Positions 10,786 to 21,340 of a stretch of 64,000 nt of DNA are shown here, in pieces. The notes beneath the pieces were generated by a model. That model had not been told where the DNA came from, ran no database searches, and saw only the letters and a list, made by a program, of their open reading frames with translations. Within the stretch, counting starts at the first letter, position 1, and each line of letters starts with the position of its first letter. A program made the translations under genes and the position numbers. Source of the DNA: Blastocladiella emersonii ATCC 22665 (taxonomy: Eukaryota; Fungi; Blastocladiomycota); assembly GCA_025594325.1 (NCBI GenBank), contig JANHCV010000001.1:2790001-2854000 (forward strand), written 5' to 3'.

Positions 10786-13700
10786 CTACGCGTCGCCGTA
10801 GTTGGAGCCCGCGTTGGACGCGGCCAGTTTCGGCGACGGCGAGTGGCCCGCCCCGCGGTGAGGCGGCTGCTGCTGCTGCTGGTAGTGCTGCTGCGACTGC
10901 TGGTAGTGCTGCTGCTGCGGCTGGTACTGCTGCGACTGGTACTGCTGCTGCGCCTGCGGCTGGTGGTAGTGCTGCTGCTGCTGCTGCGAGTAATGGTGCT
11001 GCTGCGAGTACCCGCCGCCGCCGCCGCCGAGCGTGTGCGGGCCAGGACCCGTGGGCGAACCCGCGGGCGACTGCTGGTGGAACGGCTGGTGCTGGCTCGG
11101 GGCGTAGTGGGTGCCGGGGGCGGGCATCTGGTGGTGCGCGGCGAGGGCGGCCATCTCGAGCGCCGGGTCAGGGATACCGCTGGCGTGCGTGGGCGACATG
11201 CCGCCGCCAAAGTGGCCGGCGTACGGCGCCTTGTGGATCGCCGACACGGCGCACATCCAGATGCGCGTCTTGTAGATCTTGAACAGGTCGCGGACGAGCT
11301 CGCGGAAGTCGATGCGGCGGTCGGCGAGGAAAAAGTAGGTGAGCTTGCGGCGGTCCCACTGGTACTCGGCGTCGACGACCTGCATCGGCAGCTTCTTCTG
11401 CCGCACCTTGGTCTGGCACACGGCGAGCGCCTTGGACTCGTCCTGCATCTTGGTCATGAGGATCTGCACCTCGTGCGGCTCGGCCAGCCGGTAGATGCGC
11501 TTCGGGTGGATCTCGCGGTTGACGCGGTGCAGCTCGGCCAGCGCGTCCGACTGCTGCGCCTGCAGCATGTGGATCTGGTGCGGCGTGATCGAGTTGTTGA
11601 CCACCTTGCCGAGGTCCTTGCCGCGGTCCGCCTCGACGATCACCAGGTCACCCTTGTTGATCGGGACCCCCGTGTTGGCCTCGTCGACGAAATAGTAGAT
11701 GTCGGACCGGCCCGCCTTGAACTCGACAATGTACAGCGTCGTCGTCGACGGCAGCACGTGCAGCGGGATCCCGCGCCCGACCTCGTTGAACGTGGCCGTG
11801 GGCGGCGACGTGGTGGGGCTGAGCCCGAGCTGCTGCGCGTGCGCGTGGCTGGTGCTGGCGCGGCGGCTCATGTTGCCCGGGCCGGGGAGCGGACCGAACC
11901 CGGGGGACGCGCCGTGGTGGTGGTTGTTGCCGTGGTGGTGGTTGTTGCCGTGGTGCGGGTGGTGCGACGCGCCGCCGCTCGGGCTGCCGAGGTGCTGCGC
12001 GTCCTGGCGCGCGTAGTAGTCGTCGAGGTCGTGCAGCATGCCGTTGTACCCGGCGGCCTCGACCGCCGCGTCCTGCTCGTCAATCGACAGCGACGCAAGC
12101 GCCTCGGACAGGTACCGGCCGGGCGGGTGGTACGCGCCAGCGACCGAGTGGCGACGCGGGCTCATGTGGTCGAGAGCGATCGGGCGGCTACACGGTGGTG
12201 ATGCGAGTGAGACACGGCCGCTCAATGAGACACGAGCAGAGTTCAAGCCGTACCGGTGGATCGGAGCAGCGACGTGCTCGTAGTCGCCGGCCGACATGGT
12301 GGGCGAGACCGAGAACCGGCGCTGGTTGCACAGGCGGTCGATGCGGTCGGGCGACGAGGGGAGCGACGTGTAGGGCATCGGGCCGGGCCCGCCGGGCTGA
12401 TGCATGTGGCCCATGAGGTGGTGCATGCCTGGGTGCGACTGGGGCGACGCGTCGCCGGTTGAGCCCCACGGCGGCGTCGGGTACGAGAAGGTCGACGAGC
12501 GGCGGTGCGGGAGCATGGACGCGGGCGAGCCGGGACCCGAGGTGGCGGCCGAGCCGGGCATGCTCATGTGCGGGTGCATCCCGCCGCCGTTGTGGTACTG
12601 CTGCTGCTGCTGGTGGTGGTGCATCGGACCGGGGCCGTACTGGTGCGACTGCTGCGCCTGTTGCGCCTGCTGCTGCTGTTGCTGCGACGACTGCTGGCCG
12701 GCCTGGACGCGGCCCCAGATGGACGAGATGTCTCCGGGCTCCTCGGGGGCGTGGTACTCGCGCACCTTCTGCAGGACGGGGTCGTAGGTCGAGATGGACT
12801 TTGAGCGGCCGCGGAGCTTGGACGGCACGGCGAACTGGTCGTACTCCTCATCCTCGCCCTCGGGGCCGGCGGGGTACTCGCCCTGCTCAGCCTGCTGCTG
12901 CTGCTGCTGGGCTTGCTGCTGCTGCTGCATGGACGGCTGCGGGTACTGGAAGCGGTGGACGGCGTGCTGCTGGGCGTGGTGCATGGCGGCGACGCGCTCC
13001 TCCTCCTTGTGGGCCATCTTGCGGGCGGCAATGTTCATGAGCTCGGCGGCGTGCGACGACATGTAGCTGGCGCGGCGCGGGCCGGCGCCGGCGCCGGCGC
13101 CCGAGGGCGGGCCGACGAGGGGCTGGTGGTCGGGCGAGTTGCCGCCCGTGGTGCGGTCGATGAAGACGCCGCCGGCGGCGCTGGGCGGGCCCGAGTGGGC
13201 CGTCTCGGGGGACCACGTCGGCGGGTTCGAGTGCAGGCTGGCGGCGGATCCGCGGCGCACGCGCGAGCTGCTCGACGCGTGCCACGCCATGCCGAGGGCC
13301 GAAGTCGGGCTCGGCGGGGCGAGGGCGCCCGGACCGGCGGCGTACGCGAGGCGCGGCGAGGTGCCGGTGCCGACGGCGGCGGCGTGCGACTGGTGGGCGC
13401 CGGCCGAGGGCGGCGACGCGGCGCGGGTCGCGGGCATGGCAACCACCTCGTCGTTTACGTTGGAGACGGAGACGCGGCTGCGGTTGGGGCTGTTGGAGCT
13501 GGACCGCGCGCGGGAGCGGGAGCGCGAGCGACTATGACTGCGCGAGCGGCTCGTACTACGGCCGGCGGCGGCGGCGGCGGCGGGCGCCGATCCGTTGTCG
13601 TTGGCGTCGCCAGCGCCGTTGGCGGCGGCAGCGACAGTCGTCGGGGCGGTCATGGGCTTGGTGCTGGGGGACGCGACGGGCGTCGACTTGGCCGAGGTCT

Positions 13701-13830
13701 TGATGATGGCGACGGCGCGCTTGGGCGGGGCGTTGGCGTTGTCGGCCGCGGCAGCAGCGAGAGCGGCAGCGGCGGCGGCGGCGTAGCTCCCACGACGGCC
13801 GGTCGGGCCAGCGGGCGGTGGTGCCGACAT
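10786..13830 (-). CDS. PSP1 C-terminal domain protein with long disordered poly-Q/H regions
   Basis: IVEFKAGR...GDLVIVEADRGKDLGKV...KLPMQVVDAEYQWDRRKLTYFFLADRRIDFRELVRDLFKIYKTRIWMC, typical of fungal PSP1/YLR177W-like proteins. One 66-nt intron at 12188-12253. Confidence 0.88.
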   Translation of the reverse strand: MSAPPPAGPTGRRGSYAAAAAAALAAAAADNANAPPKRAVAIIKTSAKSTPVASPSTKPMTAPTTVAAAANGAGDANDNGSAPAAAAAAGRSTSRSRSHSRSRSRSRARSSSNSPNRSRVSVSNVNDEVVAMPATRAASPPSAGAHQSHAAAVGTGTSPRLAYAAGPGALAPPSPTSALGMAWHASSSSRVRRGSAASLHSNPPTWSPETAHSGPPSAAGGVFIDRTTGGNSPDHQPLVGPPSGAGAGAGPRRASYMSSHAAELMNIAARKMAHKEEERVAAMHHAQQHAVHRFQYPQPSMQQQQQAQQQQQQAEQGEYPAGPEGEDEEYDQFAVPSKLRGRSKSISTYDPVLQKVREYHAPEEPGDISSIWGRVQAGQQSSQQQQQQAQQAQQSHQYGPGPMHHHQQQQQYHNGGGMHPHMSMPGSAATSGPGSPASMLPHRRSSTFSYPTPPWGSTGDASPQSHPGMHHLMGHMHQPGGPGPMPYTSLPSSPDRIDRLCNQRRFSVSPTMSAGDYEHVAAPIHRYGLNSARVSLSGRVSLASPPCSRPIALDHMSPRRHSVAGAYHPPGRYLSEALASLSIDEQDAAVEAAGYNGMLHDLDDYYARQDAQHLGSPSGGASHHPHHGNNHHHGNNHHHGASPGFGPLPGPGNMSRRASTSHAHAQQLGLSPTTSPPTATFNEVGRGIPLHVLPSTTTLYIVEFKAGRSDIYYFVDEANTGVPINKGDLVIVEADRGKDLGKVVNNSITPHQIHMLQAQQSDALAELHRVNREIHPKRIYRLAEPHEVQILMTKMQDESKALAVCQTKVRQKKLPMQVVDAEYQWDRRKLTYFFLADRRIDFRELVRDLFKIYKTRIWMCAVSAIHKAPYAGHFGGGMSPTHASGIPDPALEMAALAAHHQMPAPGTHYAPSQHQPFHQQSPAGSPTGPGPHTLGGGGGGYSQQHHYSQQQQQHYHQPQAQQQYQSQQYQPQQQHYQQSQQHYQQQQQPPHRGAGHSPSPKLAASNAGSNYGDA

Positions 13831-14687
13831 GGCGCGTCAGCACAGGGGCGGTTGGAGCAGCTGCGCCAGCGGGCGGGTTCCAGAGATCAGAGGAGGGCGG
13901 GCGCGGTTGGGTCGGTCGGCAGTGCAAGCCACGCGTCGCTGACGTGTCGCCGCGTGTCGCGAGGATGGAGTCGGGCTAGCGGGCGCCTTGGCGGAGCGGC
14001 GGCGGGACGGCGGTCTACACGCGGGCGAGGTCGGCGGCGGAGTGAGCAGGGAGGGCGTGCACAGCAGCAGGTCGGGTCGCCTGCCGATCGCGTCGCGGGC
14101 GCGTGGAGCGGGTCGGGCGGTGGATGGCGGTGCATCCCTGGGCCGGACGCGCCGGACGCCTGCCCAACGACGCCCCACGCGCTGCATCATCGCGGCCGGT
14201 CGGCACCGTGCGGGAAGGAGGATGGCGTACGCTGTGAGTTGCACCAAGTCGCGGCTCGCGGGGATCGGGTCGACGCGACGCTGCAGGAGAGGGCAGCGGA
14301 GCGGGCGAGCGCAGCAAGGTTTCTGCGCGCGGGCGCTCGTCGGGTCGGGTCCGTGTGATACGTGGCGCGGATCAAAGCGAACAGCCGTTGCTGTACTTCT
14401 TGACGGAACGGATTAGCAGTCTGTGCTGTGCTGGGGGAGAGAGGGAGCCGGGCGCGAGAGCGGAGGCCGGTGGGAACGGCGGGGCAGGCGGCTGTGAACG
14501 TCGCGACCGCCGGCGTGCTCCTTCTCTCTCCGCCGCCGCCGCCGCTGTATCGTATCGCATTTGCGCGGCTTAGAATGTTGAAGAATGTGACTATGAATAG
14601 AATAAGCTCTCTTGCTCCTATATATGTTCGACCTCTACATCGTGCTCGGCCACGGCCCTCAGCCGCCGGCGTACACGGCCGCTCGTA

Positions 14688-17600
14688 TCACAGCTGGTCG
14701 GCGATGCTGCGCCGGAGCTCGGCCACGGACCCGGGCGTGCCGTCCCCGGGCGGGGCGCCCTCGGGCGCAGGGCCCGACCGCCGCCCGCCCGTCTGCAGCA
14801 TCCACACCGAGTGGTAGAAGCGCGAGATGAGCGAGGAGATGGTCACCTGCCGCTGGGCCACGTCGACGCCCTCGAGCAGGAACTCGAGCTTGTCCATCCA
14901 CCGCTCGGCCACGCGCGGCGCCACCCCGCGCCGGTACGCCAGCCGGCACGCCAGCGCGTCTGAATGCGGCGACACCTCGACCGCCGTCAGATCCAGGTCC
15001 GGGTAGCTGTAGTCGGTGCTCGACGACCACTCCTTGACCAGGTGCGGGTCGCCCGCGCTCATGATGTTGCTCGGCTCGGGTACCGCGGGAGCGGGCGTCG
15101 TCGGTGAGGATGCAGTTGCAGCGTCAGGTGCTGCTGAGCCGTCAGAGGCCGCGCCGTCCGTCGAGGACGCCGCGTTGTCACCTTGACCCACGGCCTGGAT
15201 CGCCGGCTGCGGCGACGGCTGCTGGAGCGCCGACGGTGGGATCAGCGCGTCGAGCGGGTCCTGCTCGAGGAGCACCGCGGGCCCGACGCCGTGGCCGGCG
15301 AGGAACTTGGCGTGCGCGTGGCTCACGTACTCGAACACCACCATGGGCCGGTACGCGTTGCCCTGCACCCAGTCGCCGTCGAGCTCGCGCGCGTCCTGCT
15401 TCTCGGCCACGTCGCGGTCAATCTGCGCGTACAGGGCCTCGTCGCTCACGTACTGCGCGCGCTCGTCGGCCGCGCGCGCCTCCTTGGCCACGCGCGCCAC
15501 AAAGACGTGCAGCGGGCACGCGAGGTCGCGCAGGTCCATGCGCAGCGGCACCGTGACCGTGAGCCCGGGCCCGACCGCCACGCCCTTGGCGACGCGCGCG
15601 TGCCGCAGGCTGACGCGGTACCCGATCACAAACACGTCCATGCCCGTGACGTGCTTGACCAGGATCGCGAACATGGCCAGCAGCACGTGGCCCGTCTTGT
15701 CGTCGTCGTCGTCGTCGCCCTTCTCGCGGCAGTACTCGCGCGCGTACCGCGCCAGCGCCTGCACGATGCCGCGCCGCGGCGTGAAGGGGAGCGACAGCGG
15801 GAGCGGGACCGACGCCCACAGGTCTGTCATGGACGAGTACGGCGTGCGGCCGTCGCCGAGCCGCGCGTCGAGGCACGCGCTCGGTGTCAGCGTGAAGACG
15901 AGCGGCGGGTGCACCAGGTTCTTGTACTGCAGGTGAACATGGGCGAGCCGGTCGACGTCGGCCATGCTCGACTTGAGCAGCGCGCGCTGCGTCGTGACCT
16001 CGCGCCGCAGCCGCAGCGTCTTCTTCTCGAGGTCGTACTTGAGCTTGGCGTGCTCCTGGATCCCGTCCTTGATGCGGTTGCGCACGTGCTCGATGAGCGC
16101 CAGCACCTTGCGCTTCTCGCGGCCGACGATCCCGTACGCCTGCATCACCTCGGACTCGGTCAGCTCGGCAAACACCTCGATGGCGAGCGCCTCGAGCTTG
16201 ACCGAGACGGTCGGGTCGACGCCCTGCCGGTCGAGCAGCCCGCGCAGGCCCGCCACGGGGACCCCCGACCCGCCGTCGCTCAGGATGCTGCGGTACACGG
16301 TCTCGCGGACCTCCTCGGTCATCTCGAGCACGCCGCCGTGGTCGTCGCGGATCACCGTCACCTTGCCCGACGCCGCCGCCACGGACGCTGCCGCCGCGAG
16401 CTTGGCGTGCGCGGCCTCGACCTGCGACAGGTCCATTTCGAGCCCAGCGATCCGCGTGATGATCGACTGGATCTGCCGCTCCTTGGCGCGCCGCTCGCCC
16501 TCGAGCCGCGCCATCTCCTTCTCGAGGTGCGCCTTGCGCGACAGGTCGACGTACTCCTGGCGCGACTCGAACACCTGCGCCTTGAACCCGACAATGGCCG
16601 CGTCGCGCTTGGCCGCGCCCGAGCTCGTCGACAGCGCCGCGGCCTCGTCCTCGGCGAAATCAACAAAGTCCATGCTCGGCCGCGCGCACACCACGGGGAA
16701 CTCGCGCTCGCACGCCCACCGCTTGGCTTCGCTCATGCCCGTGATGGCCGTCGGCGGGATCGCCGCCCACGACGCGGCCGCGAACCCGCGCGTCACTGCC
16801 ATGGTGTAGGTGCGCCAGCCGAGCGCGACGAGGAGGTCGGCCGACCGCGCGTCGCCGATGAGCGGCGACACCACGGCGTACACGCGCGTCTCGCCCGGCT
16901 GCTGCGAGTGCAGGAACACGCGCCAGCCCTGGCCGATCTGCGCGCGCGCCGGCCCGCCGCTCGAGGACATGCCCGACGCCGCGTCCTGCACTATGACCAG
17001 CGCGTCGTCCGGGTCGAGCCCCGTCGGCAGCACGCGGACCTGCGGGTCGTTGCGCGTGATGGCCGCGGCCGAGGCCACGGCGCCCGCAGCCTGCAGCGGC
17101 GGCGGCACCTGCACGCACGCGTCCACATCGGCGTCGACGATACGCGAGTTGCGGTCGAGCGCGCTGTGGAAGATGCGGTGCGCGCGCGCCGCGCGGCCCA
17201 GGGAGGACGCCAGCAGCTCCATGTGGATCGTCGGGCTCGTGATCCGGAACGCCGCGATGTGCACGGGCAGCGCGCGGCCCGTCGGGTTCGGGTGGTTCTC
17301 GTCGGCCGCGGGGAACTGGCACGAGTACAGGTACTGCTGGTGGAACGTCGGCGGGTACACGACCCGGTCGTACATGTCGGGCGGGTCGTCGCGCGCGCCC
17401 AGCGGGTACGGCGAGTCGTCGTGCTCGAGCTGCTCGACCGACGGCTTCTTGGTCAGGGCGGCCGGAGCCGCCGGTGCACCAGTGGTCGAGCTGCCGTCGC
17501 CGGGTGTGGTCGGACTCGCACCAGAATCTTGAGCGCTTGAAGGCTCCGCGGCGACGGCGCTCATCGAGGCGCCAGCGTTCCCCGCCGACGCTGGACGAGA

Positions 17601-19329
17601 GGACGTTTCGAGACCGAGAGCCGTGGCCGCGACCGCTGTGCCGTCGGCCTGCTGTATCCCGCCGTGCTCGGACCCGACGTGCTCTTGATCGTGGGACTGA
17701 ATACAATGCAATCGTCAGCAGACAGTCGATCCACGCTCGCAAAAGTAAACGTACGAGTAGACCGCTCTGGCTTCCGCCGAGGAACCGAACCGACTTGGAC
17801 ATCTGGCCCGTCGACCCACCGCCCCCACCCTCGCCATCCACGGGCGACTTGGTGCCCGACTTGCCCGGCGAGGCCACCGAGTCGAGCGACTTGGTCACGA
17901 ACGGGACAATCGGCGATCCCTCGCGCTTGACCGACCCGCGACGCTGCCGGCCGCCGTCTGCCCCCGTTCCCGGCGCCTTGAGCGACGACCGCCGGCTACG
18001 CGATCCCGTCACCACGAGGCTGGACATGGACGTCGCCGAGCGACTGCTCGAAGTCGGCTGCGGCGTCTTGTTGTTGTTGCTCCGCGCCCGCGCATCGCCC
18101 GGCTGCGGGAGCACCGCGTGCGCGTTGCGCGTGATCGGCGCGGCGCTCACGGCGTGGACCGACGACGACGACGGCGGGCGCACGGGCAGCGGGCTCTGGT
18201 CGCCGAGCATCGCGCGCGTGTTGGCCGGGTGCGGGAGCAGCTTGACCGTGGTCGCGACGGGCGTCAGGAACCCGCTGCGGCCGCGCCCGCGGTCCTCGTC
18301 CGTGTCGCTCCCGCCGTCACCGTCCCGCCCGCTGCGGCTCGAGCTGCTGTCGTTGCTCCCGTGCCGCTGGTGCTGGTGCTGGTGCAGCCGCTGCTGCTGT
18401 TGCTGGACGTGCGCGGCGACCGCGGCGCGCAGCTGGTCCTCGACGAGCGCCGAGGTGGCCGCCGCAACGAGCCGCTGCGGGAGCGCCGACTCGTGGCTGC
18501 TGTGGACCTCGTGCCGGGAGCCCGCCGGCGGGACGGCGTGCAGGCTCGACCCCGCGACGGCCATGGCGACCTCGCGGTCGAGCTCGACGAGCTGTGCGTC
18601 GTCCATGGCCGAGTCCGGGTCGCCGATCCGGTCGCCCGGCGACCACCCGAGCGGCCGCGTCACGCTGCCGCGCCGGCTCCGGTTCGGCGTGACCGCCGAG
18701 TGGTGGTGCGTCGTCGGCGTTTTGGTCCCGGCACTGCGTTTCGCGTCCGGGACAATCGACGCGCGCCGCGGGGCTCCGCTAGCCGCACCGCCGCCGACCC
18801 GCGTCGCCGTGAGCGCGTCGAGACTACGCGCGAGCGACGGCTGCATGCGGCGCGCCTGGCGCACGCTGTCTGGGAGGTTGCTGGACGGCGGCGCCTGCGC
18901 GACGGGCGGGAGCGACTCGCCGGGGAGCGGCGCCGGGAGCTCGTGCGACGCCGACTCGGGGCGGTGGTGGTGGTGGTAGCCGTGGCCCGCGACGGGCGGG
19001 GACGAGATGCTCGCACGGTGATACCGGCCGCCGCCGCCGCCGTGCGCGGACACGGGCGGGACGACGGGGCGCCGCGGACCGACTTGATTGGAGCCGACGG
19101 CGACCGAGCCCAGGCTGCGCCGGATGTCGCCGCGCTCCTCGGCGCCCTTGGGCAGGCCCTTCCAGAACGGCTGGGCCTGCTGCGGCGGCGGCGCGGGCCG
19201 GTTCGGGTCGTCGAGCCGGTGCAGCGACGTGAGCGACTGGTGGACCTTGGTGCGCTGCGTCGTGAGCCCGTCGCGGTACCGCTGGCCGCCGACGGGGGCG
19301 CCCGTGTGGGCGTTGTGGTGTGAGCTCAT
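14688..19329 (-). CDS. Large protein (~1500 aa): disordered N-terminus + degenerate NRPS condensation-like domain interrupted by a coiled-coil/SAM-like insert
   Basis: ATG at 19329 (MSSHHNAH). A 58-nt intron at 17697-17754 joins two ORFs in frame. C-domain-like motifs: YPPTFHQQYLY, ARAHRIFHS, SPLIGDARS, FVDFAEDE, LLAMFAILVKHVTGMDVFVIG, TVTVPLRMDL, LAYRRG. Confidence 0.7.
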
Positions 19330-19576: not shown

Positions 19577-21127
19577 TTACTTGGGGATGGCGTGCTTGGC
19601 CTTGTGCATCAGCCAGATAGCCGACGACAGCAGGGCGAGGGAGCCGCCCTGGTGCGCGGCGGCCAGCTCGATCGGGATAAAGTAGAGGAGCGTGGTGATG
19701 CCGAGCGTGGCCTGGGCCAGGGCGAAACCCATGACGCCGTGCGCGGCGAGCTGGACCGGCTTGGGCAGCGGGAGGCGGCGGCTCGCGACCCACATGGCCG
19801 ACACGCTGGCCAGCGTGGTGTAGGCGAGGAGGCGGTGGTCGAGCTGCACCGTCACGGGGTTCTCGAAGATGTTCTTCCACCGCTGGTCCTGGAACAGCAT
19901 CAGCGGGGTCACCGTCTCGTTGGGGTCGACGGGCGCCATGGTCGCGTTGCCGTTGATGGACGTCTTCTGGATGCGGCGGAACAGCTCCGACGACGGCGGG
20001 ATGAACGAGTCGCCCACCAGCGGCCACGTGTTGTAGACGAGACCCGCGTCGAGGCCGGCGACAAAGGCGCCCGACAGCGCCGTGATGAAGACGAGGCCAG
20101 CGACGCCGTGGACGCTGCGCGCAAACTTGCGGCACTTGGCGAGGATCTCGGGGGCGAGCTGCGACACGGCGGCGCGCTCCGCGTTGACGCCGTTGTTGGT
20201 GATGCCCGTGTTCCACTTGCCGAGGACCTGGAGGCCGTTCCAGAGCGAGATGACGTAGATGACAAAGGCCGAGCCGAGGTGCGCGGCGAGGCGGTACTGC
20301 GAGACGCGCGGGGTCGCGTTGGCGTGGTCGAGAATGTCGTTCTCGAGCCCAGACTTGACCATGTACCAGCCGAGCGCGCCCTGGAAGCCGACGAGGACGC
20401 AGCAGGTCCAGGCGGCCTTGGTCACGCCGGGCGACATCCAGCGCGCGGCGACGGCCGGGTTGGCGGTCGAGGTGCCGAGGGCCTTGGCGATGCGGGCCGC
20501 CGAGGGACGGGTGAACGTGAAGTAGAGCGCGGGGACCAGGAAGACCATGCCGATGGTGCGGCCGAGGTTGCGGTGCAGCCACTCCCAGTAGAAGATGTTC
20601 TTGAACTCGCCGAGCGTGATCGAGTGGTTGAGCAGCTTGTACTCGGGCGACTCCTTGTACTTGTTGAACTCGACCTCCCATGCCTCGGCCGACGACGGCC
20701 ACGCCATGCCGCGAACCACGTTCCACTCGGTGATGGACAGCCCGCTCTCGGTCAGCCGCGTGATGCCGCCGACCACCACGATGGTGAAGACCAGTGACGA
20801 CGAGAACAGAAACCACTTGCCGATGATCGGGTGGCTCAGCGGCTCGACGGCAGCCGCCGACTCGCCCGCGGTGGAGGCGGTCCCCGACGAGAACCGGGCA
20901 CGCTGGCCCCAGCGCTGGGCAAACTGGCGCATGCGGCTGGCCGCGCCGGCGCGCATGGACGAGAAGGACGCGGCAGCGGCCGTCGCCTTGGTCGACATGC
21001 GAGTGGCGGGGGCCGCGGTAGTGGGGGCCGAGCGCAGGGCAACCTTGATGGCCGGGCGGGCCGTGGCCGCGGCGTGGCGGAGGCACCGCGCGCCCGTTGC
21101 CCCGACGGGCAGGGCGAAGCGTAGCAT
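19577..21127 (-). CDS. COX15: Heme A synthase
   Basis: VVGGITRLTESGLSITEW, FYWEWLHR, SQYRLAAHL, GAFVAGLDAG, QLDHR and AAAHQ; the four heme-related His are present. Mitochondrial presequence; intronless. Confidence 0.96.
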   Translation of the reverse strand: MLRFALPVGATGARCLRHAAATARPAIKVALRSAPTTAAPATRMSTKATAAAASFSSMRAGAASRMRQFAQRWGQRARFSSGTASTAGESAAAVEPLSHPIIGKWFLFSSSLVFTIVVVGGITRLTESGLSITEWNVVRGMAWPSSAEAWEVEFNKYKESPEYKLLNHSITLGEFKNIFYWEWLHRNLGRTIGMVFLVPALYFTFTRPSAARIAKALGTSTANPAVAARWMSPGVTKAAWTCCVLVGFQGALGWYMVKSGLENDILDHANATPRVSQYRLAAHLGSAFVIYVISLWNGLQVLGKWNTGITNNGVNAERAAVSQLAPEILAKCRKFARSVHGVAGLVFITALSGAFVAGLDAGLVYNTWPLVGDSFIPPSSELFRRIQKTSINGNATMAPVDPNETVTPLMLFQDQRWKNIFENPVTVQLDHRLLAYTTLASVSAMWVASRRLPLPKPVQLAAHGVMGFALAQATLGITTLLYFIPIELAAAHQGGSLALLSSAIWLMHKAKHAIPK

Positions 21128-21340
21128 GGTGTTGATACGTGGAGGGCCGCGCGATGGGCTTCTGTGGAGAGAGAGAGGATGTTGTTGATCTGGCAGAAAA
21201 CTTAAGCTCGGTCAGGACGCCGATCGCTCGGCGCCGGCGTCGAGGCGAGCTTGAGCCGCACGCACGTGCGAGTCTCTCGCGTCCCTTCGCGCCCACCTCC
21301 CATGAAAGCTGTTGCTTGAGCACGGAACCTACTTGCTGCA

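Follow-up and report, generated by a model that had tools for sequence, protein, structure and literature searches.

Gene model and reading frame

The window analyzed here, a 64,000-nucleotide stretch of contig JANHCV010000001.1 from Blastocladiella emersonii ATCC 22665, carries on its minus strand a gene (positions 14688 to 19329) predicted to encode a protein of 1527 amino acids. Judging from profile matches, this product contains a condensation (C) fold, the two lobes of which are separated by an insert predicted to form an antiparallel coiled-coil arm with a SAM-like unit at its tip. The genome of the strain was described previously (PMC9730499). Two exons (exon 1, 19329 to 17755; exon 2, 17696 to 14691) and a stop codon (14690 to 14688) were predicted. 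The single intron in the whole 4.6-kb gene is 58 nucleotides long (17754 to 17697) and has a 5' GTACGT, a CTGAC branch-like site, and a 3' CAG. The product corresponded to the NCBI hypothetical protein H9P43_001043 of the same strain, with equal length and 100% identity over amino acids 620 to 1527, the region searched.

An initial annotation of the window had described two heptad helices and a globular unit at 15940 to 16600, following the motif FVDFAEDE. All of the peptides that it quoted exist and fall within one uninterrupted frame, which lies on the minus strand, opposite to what those coordinates implied. This frame (17714 to 14691, ~3 kb) is open throughout and contains FVDFAEDE (16667 to 16644), the first helix (HLEKEMARLE..., from 16529), the globular unit (LRGLLDRQ...IEHVR, 16247 to 16080), and the second helix (IQEHAKLKY...ADVDRL, 16061 to 15945). 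The first helix does not begin directly after FVDFAEDE as described; about 40 residues intervene, including the canonical helix that follows the C4 motif. Translation of the plus strand over 15940 to 16600 produced solely Arg/Ala/Pro-rich antisense strings and was rejected. Long plus-strand open reading frames (ORFs) overlapping the gene (e.g., 15183 to 17540, 785 amino acids) were likewise Arg/Ala/Pro-rich antisense frames and were not considered genes. Such antisense ORFs are expected over a coding region with 70% G+C, and the G+C content was ~70% across the window.

Condensation fold and degenerate catalytic motif

Both flanks of the insert are, on the evidence of sequence profiles, parts of a C fold. 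The N-lobe (16557 to 17393, minus strand; amino acids ~627 to 905) was assigned from an N-lobe profile and Foldseek, and the C-lobe (14691 to 15803, minus strand; amino acids ~1157 to 1527), which includes a long disordered loop, from Pfam and PDB profile matches. A family profile restricted to the N-lobe matched C/E domains only when searched against the PDB (BacC, E = 1.8e-6; McyA, E = 2.6e-4), and a profile of 35 family sequences matched solved C domains in the C-lobe (McyB, Txo1, and the teicoplanin X-domain; E = 3.3e-7). The Pfam PF00668 match in the protein itself lies in the C-lobe and is below the gathering cutoff (E = 0.008); C-lobes of relatives were found above the gathering score for this family, including that of Rozella (53.4 bits) and two others (48.3 and 43.7 bits). 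Within a language-model atlas, PF00668 was present in 59 of the 60 clusters nearest to this protein. The motif FVDFAEDE (16644 to 16667, minus strand; amino acids 869 to 876) is C4-like, as the profile stretch that contains it aligned with the C4 motif region of BacC (Y-x-D-Y-x-x-W). An AlphaFold model of the whole domain was poor (predicted local distance difference test [pLDDT], 51.9), its alignment of 6 sequences being too shallow, and was used solely for a family check with Foldseek, in which the top 50 matches were all to C-family structures (E = 1.7e-3 or weaker).

A run of six Asp residues in a C-lobe loop (~15720 to 15700, minus strand; amino acids ~1185 to 1190) remained D/E rich in 6/6 homologues from Blastocladiomycota, pointing to conservation of an acidic patch or loop there.

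The catalytic C3 motif of C domains, HHxxxDGxS, is replaced in this protein by the degenerate sequence SPLIGDARS (16842 to 16868, minus strand; amino acids 802 to 810), as placed by HMMER alignment. Across the family, HMMER aligned the pattern S-T-x-x-x-D-E-x-S with the HHxxxDGxS of solved C domains. His was found at neither HHxxxDG position in 35/35 aligned relatives: the first position was Ser in 30 of the 35, and the second was Thr, Pro, Ser, Arg, or another residue. The Asp of the motif was invariant (35/35). Many residues of the C-lobe were invariant as well, one of them a new His located in LLKH. No Pfam domain other than PF00668 was detected in the 1527-amino-acid protein, and carrier, adenylation, and thioesterase domains were absent from it. 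We infer that the C fold in this protein is catalytically dead.

Modeled stalk and SAM-like tip of the insert

The insert spans about 215 residues (amino acids ~905 to 1120) and is flanked by the post-C4 helix on one side and the initial elements of the C-lobe on the other. Matches of the N-lobe to solved C domains reach up to the C4-like motif, and the Pfam match in relatives restarts at model positions 205 to 253 of 456, just past the insert; together these place the insert at mid-domain. An AlphaFold2 model of amino acids 899 to 1133, based on an alignment of 56 homologous inserts, had a mean pLDDT of 94.3 and a predicted template modeling score (pTM) of 0.79. It begins with a short base β-strand on the ascending side (16560 to 16571, minus strand; amino acids 901 to 904, model residues 3 to 6), followed by stalk helix 1 (16368 to 16544, minus strand; amino acids 910 to 968, model residues 12 to 70), which ascends over 59 residues. 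Stalk helix 2 (15912 to 16067, minus strand; amino acids 1069 to 1120) descends as part of a continuous 70-residue helix (model residues 153 to 222) that includes helix 5 of the SAM-like unit. A second short base β-strand, on the descending side (15888 to 15899, minus strand; amino acids 1125 to 1128, model residues 227 to 230), follows a conserved HPP motif; P1122 was invariant among the 56 sequences.

In the model, the two long helices are predicted to pair antiparallel within one chain, in agreement with the coiled-coil arm and hairpin proposed in the initial annotation. In the 56-sequence profile, helices 1 and 2 had their strongest hydrophobic periods at 3.5 and 3.55 residues, respectively. 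Helix 2 was exactly 70 residues long in 56/56 relatives, and length variation in helix 1 was confined to the tip end. A VIA-align search against 48,161 chains matched two-helix antiparallel hairpins over model residues ~9 to 228, with superpositions of ~100 to 120 residues at 1.6 to 3.8 Å. The matches included IpaB (Z = 12.2; 1.6 Å over 102 residues), p85 iSH2 (Z = 12.0), SMC arms (Z = 11.9), and an inner-arm dynein stalk (Z = 11.0), as well as Rad50, moesin, and prefoldin. From ~52 paired residues, the arm was calculated to be ~8 nm long. A fold search of the language-model atlas with the insert model returned no match that reached a template modeling (TM) score of 0.5, and no similar module was found among its cluster representatives. 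Single-sequence Pfam matches of the insert and tip to Striatin (E, ~1e-3), Tropomyosin, and a stray SecDF were rejected as compositional. The whole module was conserved in six Blastocladiomycota homologues and in ~60 family representatives; the pattern is not attributable to chance.

The tip consists of two parts. A β-hairpin and a 13-residue helix (16278 to 16358, minus strand; amino acids 972 to 998; model strands 74 to 77 and 83 to 86, helix 88 to 100) come first; the initial annotation had correctly recognized a globular unit and had overlooked this conserved sub-element, the helix of which had a fixed length in 56/56 relatives. The SAM-like unit (16068 to 16247, minus strand; amino acids 1009 to 1068) has model helices at residues 111 to 117, 122 to 128, 133 to 137, 141 to 146, and 153 onward. 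The five-helix fold anticipated for this unit was thus modeled as four short helices and the start of a long helix (pLDDT 94, with each of these helices at pLDDT >90), and the last helix runs unbroken into the descending stalk helix.

A 66-sequence profile of the tip was compared with 177,635 PDB sequences, and the top five matches were all SAM domains, aligned over positions ~4 to 60 of 65 to 71 (SASH3, E = 0.0016 and 0.0019; ANKS6, E = 0.009; BICC1, E = 0.045; SAMSN1, E = 0.18). The SASH3 SAM domain again ranked first when a 6-sequence profile of the SAM-like unit was used (E = 0.0068), and SAM domain matches recurred with the whole-domain family profile. The tip unit is probably a divergent SAM-like domain. 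The SAM domain of the initial annotation is supported by the five modeled helices and the PDB matches, with the reservation that the similarity is remote and falls below Pfam thresholds.

The SAM-like unit also showed a conserved division of charge. Helix 5 contains a basic stretch (16121 to 16068, minus strand; amino acids 1051 to 1068) with seven conserved positions (R1051, K1053, R1054, K1055, R1064, R1066, and K1068) that were Lys or Arg in 82 to 98% of 56 representatives, and the best-conserved stretch of the insert, YVRNRIKE, lies around these basic positions. Helices 1 to 4 are net acidic. In SAM domains, the usual head-to-tail contact sets the basic start of helix 5 against an acidic surface of the mid-loop, and a basic patch at the same position binds RNA in Smaug/Vts1. 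The charge pattern, as read from the alignment, would fit either a head-to-tail contact or RNA binding and does not choose between them.

Family range and proposed role

A word-based search returned five relatives, of which those with names were all Blastocladiomycota. When the family profile was run exhaustively with HMMER against 1.84 billion representatives, 84 proteins were obtained at E ≤0.001, 54 of them at E ≤1e-30. The N-lobe, insert, and C-lobe occurred in that order in ~60 of the 84; the short matches that were inspected were fragments of the same order, and one of the 84 was a true nonribosomal peptide synthetase (NRPS) of 5663 amino acids that matched in the C-lobe alone. Taxonomy was looked up for 30 of the 84 representatives, and all 22 of those that carried species names were zoosporic fungi. 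They included members of the Blastocladiomycota (Coelomomyces, Sorochytrium, and Paraphysoderma) and of many orders of the Chytridiomycota (Phlyctochytrium, Spizellomyces, Borealophlyctis, Entophlyctis, Fimicolochytrium, Nowakowskiella, Synchytrium, Lobulomyces, Chytridium, Chytriomyces, Kappamyces, and Caulochytrium), as well as Gonapodya and Rozella allomycis. In the Rozella protein, the C3 motif is degenerate, the SAM-like unit and helix 2 are present, and helix 1 is shorter. In a quick maximum-likelihood tree, which is indicative only, 5/6 Blastocladiomycota and the Spizellomycetales grouped as expected, and the tree was roughly congruent with taxonomy.

The presence of the module in Rozella, Chytridiomycota, and Blastocladiomycota suggests that the insert is probably old in fungi. 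No Dikarya name occurred among the 30 representatives looked up, and the source data hold thousands of Dikarya genomes; this absence and the small number of clusters (84) argue, short of proof, for a family that Dikarya lack or seldom carry. Every species-named member looked up, from Rozella to Blastocladiella, was a swimming-spore fungus, which makes the protein a candidate marker and a candidate component of the poorly understood zoospore stage, a putative link drawn from the phylogenetic profile.

A full-text literature search turned up no report in which a SAM or coiled-coil insert accompanies a condensation domain and none on this protein family; the initial annotation likewise knew of no described protein of this architecture. 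Family proteins are labeled in databases as "hypothetical" or, automatically, as "Condensation domain-containing." The component folds are known; as far as checked, what is new is how they are combined, where the insert is placed, and the family itself. The initial annotation had offered the region as a candidate new system; what was found is a single protein family, not a multigene system, and the activities that it suggested (polymerization and the binding of RNA or protein) are putative.

Condensation domains ordinarily act as catalysts within assembly lines for peptides. The NRPS condensation domain (PF00668; VibH, SrfA-C, and CDA-C1) has a two-lobed fold, which is predicted for the protein described here as well, and its C1-to-C5 motif order is recognizable in this protein. 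No other family appeared among the profile and Foldseek matches of the two lobes. In contrast to that domain, the catalytic histidines have been lost throughout this eukaryotic family, partner domains of the carrier or adenylation type are missing from the protein, a 215-residue stalk-and-tip module occupies the lobe junction, and the named members that were looked up all come from zoosporic fungi. The X-domain of glycopeptide NRPSs (PDB 4tx2/4tx3) matched the C-lobe (E = 3.6e-7) and was also a Foldseek match. It is a condensation fold without catalysis that serves as a docking platform. The X-domain differs in being part of a bacterial NRPS module that recruits P450s and in having no coiled-coil or SAM insert.

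The SAM domains of SASH3, ANKS6, BICC1, and SAMSN1 have ~65 residues and five helices and show end-to-end profile similarity to the tip, with which they share a helix 5 that starts G-x-[KR]-x-[KR]-[KR]-K-[IV]-L-x-L. Unlike in those proteins, helix 5 here extends for 50 more residues as a strand of the coiled coil, and an extra β-hairpin and helix precede a unit whose similarity stays below Pfam thresholds. The dynein stalk with its microtubule-binding domain, the SMC/Rad50 arms, and p85 iSH2 have the same out-and-back helices, tipped distally by a small domain. This likeness is one of shape alone, with no sequence relationship found; the arm described here is short (~8 nm), and its host is an enzyme fold rather than an ATPase. 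The coiled coil of KSR1 is fused directly to SAM (PDB 5vyk); its Foldseek match was weak (probability, 0.20), and the KSR1 module is N-terminal, not an insert.

The architecture of C fold, stalk, and SAM-like tip is supported by these results. The joint explanation that best accounts for them, and that was judged likely, is that a single gene encodes a pseudoenzyme scaffold composed of a dead C fold, an antiparallel arm at the lobe junction, and a SAM-like tip. The dead C-fold body may retain a binding role, by analogy with the X-domain of glycopeptide NRPSs. The rigid arm of fixed length would keep the SAM-like tip ~8 nm away, and the tip would contact protein, either by head-to-tail self-association or by docking, with the basic face of helix 5 meeting an acidic one, such as helices 1 to 4 present. 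By gaining a fixed-length arm and an interaction domain at its end, an enzyme fold would have become a structural or adaptor protein. A more specific proposal is that the protein is an ancestral fungal adaptor or polymer, stalked and SAM tipped on a dead C fold, that builds or anchors a swimming-spore structure (the flagellar apparatus or an organelle complex of the zoospore, for example) and was lost, together with the swimming-spore stage, in terrestrial fungi; this proposal, including the structures named in it, was given a low probability.

Several observations count against the scaffold explanation. The tip could be a small bundle of helices whose resemblance to SAM is convergent rather than a SAM homologue, which was considered unlikely. 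None of 66 members reached the Pfam SAM gathering score, in keeping with remote similarity; single-sequence Pfam scans of the insert and tip matched no SAM family. In favor of a SAM domain, weak single-member matches to SAM_1, SAM_3, SAM_TNK, and mS41 SAM were obtained for 7 of the 66 (best E values, 0.006 to 0.05). The insert model did match the SAM domains of SARM1, liprin, Ph/Scm, and Scm in Foldseek (probability, 0.6 to 0.9), amid coiled-coil matches and with E values of 0.3 to 0.7 and TM scores by target of up to 0.49. A feature search of the language-model atlas with the tip gave scores of 0.80 or lower to mixed families and was treated as a lead only. Convergence is opposed by the exclusive ranking of SAM domains in the top five of the PDB comparison, aligned over nearly their whole length, by their return with the 6-sequence and whole-domain profiles, and by the five modeled helices with a long fifth.

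The stalk poses a second question. Z scores of ~12 are common among helical hairpins and reflect shape, not kinship; the antiparallel pairing was inferred from the pTM and the superpositions, not from coordinates; and the exit of the stalk from the C fold lies in a part for which the whole-domain model is not confident. The long helices might instead pair between chains, as a four-helix bundle or swapped dimer, in which case the insert would be mainly a dimerization device. Long amphipathic helices frequently oligomerize, several of the VIA-align matches belong to dimers or larger bundles, and the insert was modeled as a monomer only. Against such pairing, both ends of the insert have to come back together at a single point of the C fold, the lengths of both helices are matched and conserved, short β-strands are modeled at both base ends, and the monomer model is confident in its pTM. 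Pairing between chains was accordingly regarded as improbable.

The dead status of the C fold is also open to challenge, since some C-family enzymes tolerate the loss of the second His and keep their activity. The protein could still be an enzyme, namely, a coenzyme A-dependent acyltransferase of the same superfamily with another catalytic base, its stalk serving to regulate or localize it. The invariant structural Asp of the motif and the many invariant C-lobe residues, among them the new His in LLKH, are compatible with residual activity. This alternative was nevertheless considered quite unlikely given the loss of both histidines in every aligned relative, the lack of carrier, adenylation, and thioesterase domains, and the presence of the noncatalytic X-domain among the best C-lobe matches. 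An annotation or assembly artifact fusing unrelated genes is extremely unlikely and was rejected, and a split of the region into two separate genes found no support: the frame is unbroken over 3 kb, and the same domain order recurs within one polypeptide in ~60 representatives from independent genomes, with the fragmentary matches being pieces of it.

The confident model of the insert supplies exact construct boundaries for experiments. The N-terminal ~620 amino acids (17394 to 19329, minus strand, a span that includes the intron) are of low complexity and probably disordered, with pLDDT <50 at the start of the whole-domain model; no Pfam family was matched there, and the segment may hold regulation or targeting. 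Near the N terminus, a short motif, GGQRYR[DE] (GGQRYRD in this protein), was common to the Blastocladiella and Allomyces homologues. The downstream neighbor (10789 to 13836, minus strand) encodes a Q/H/S-rich protein, and the upstream neighboring ORF (19580 to 21211, minus strand) resembles, as judged by eye, a membrane protein of the COX15/heme A synthase type.

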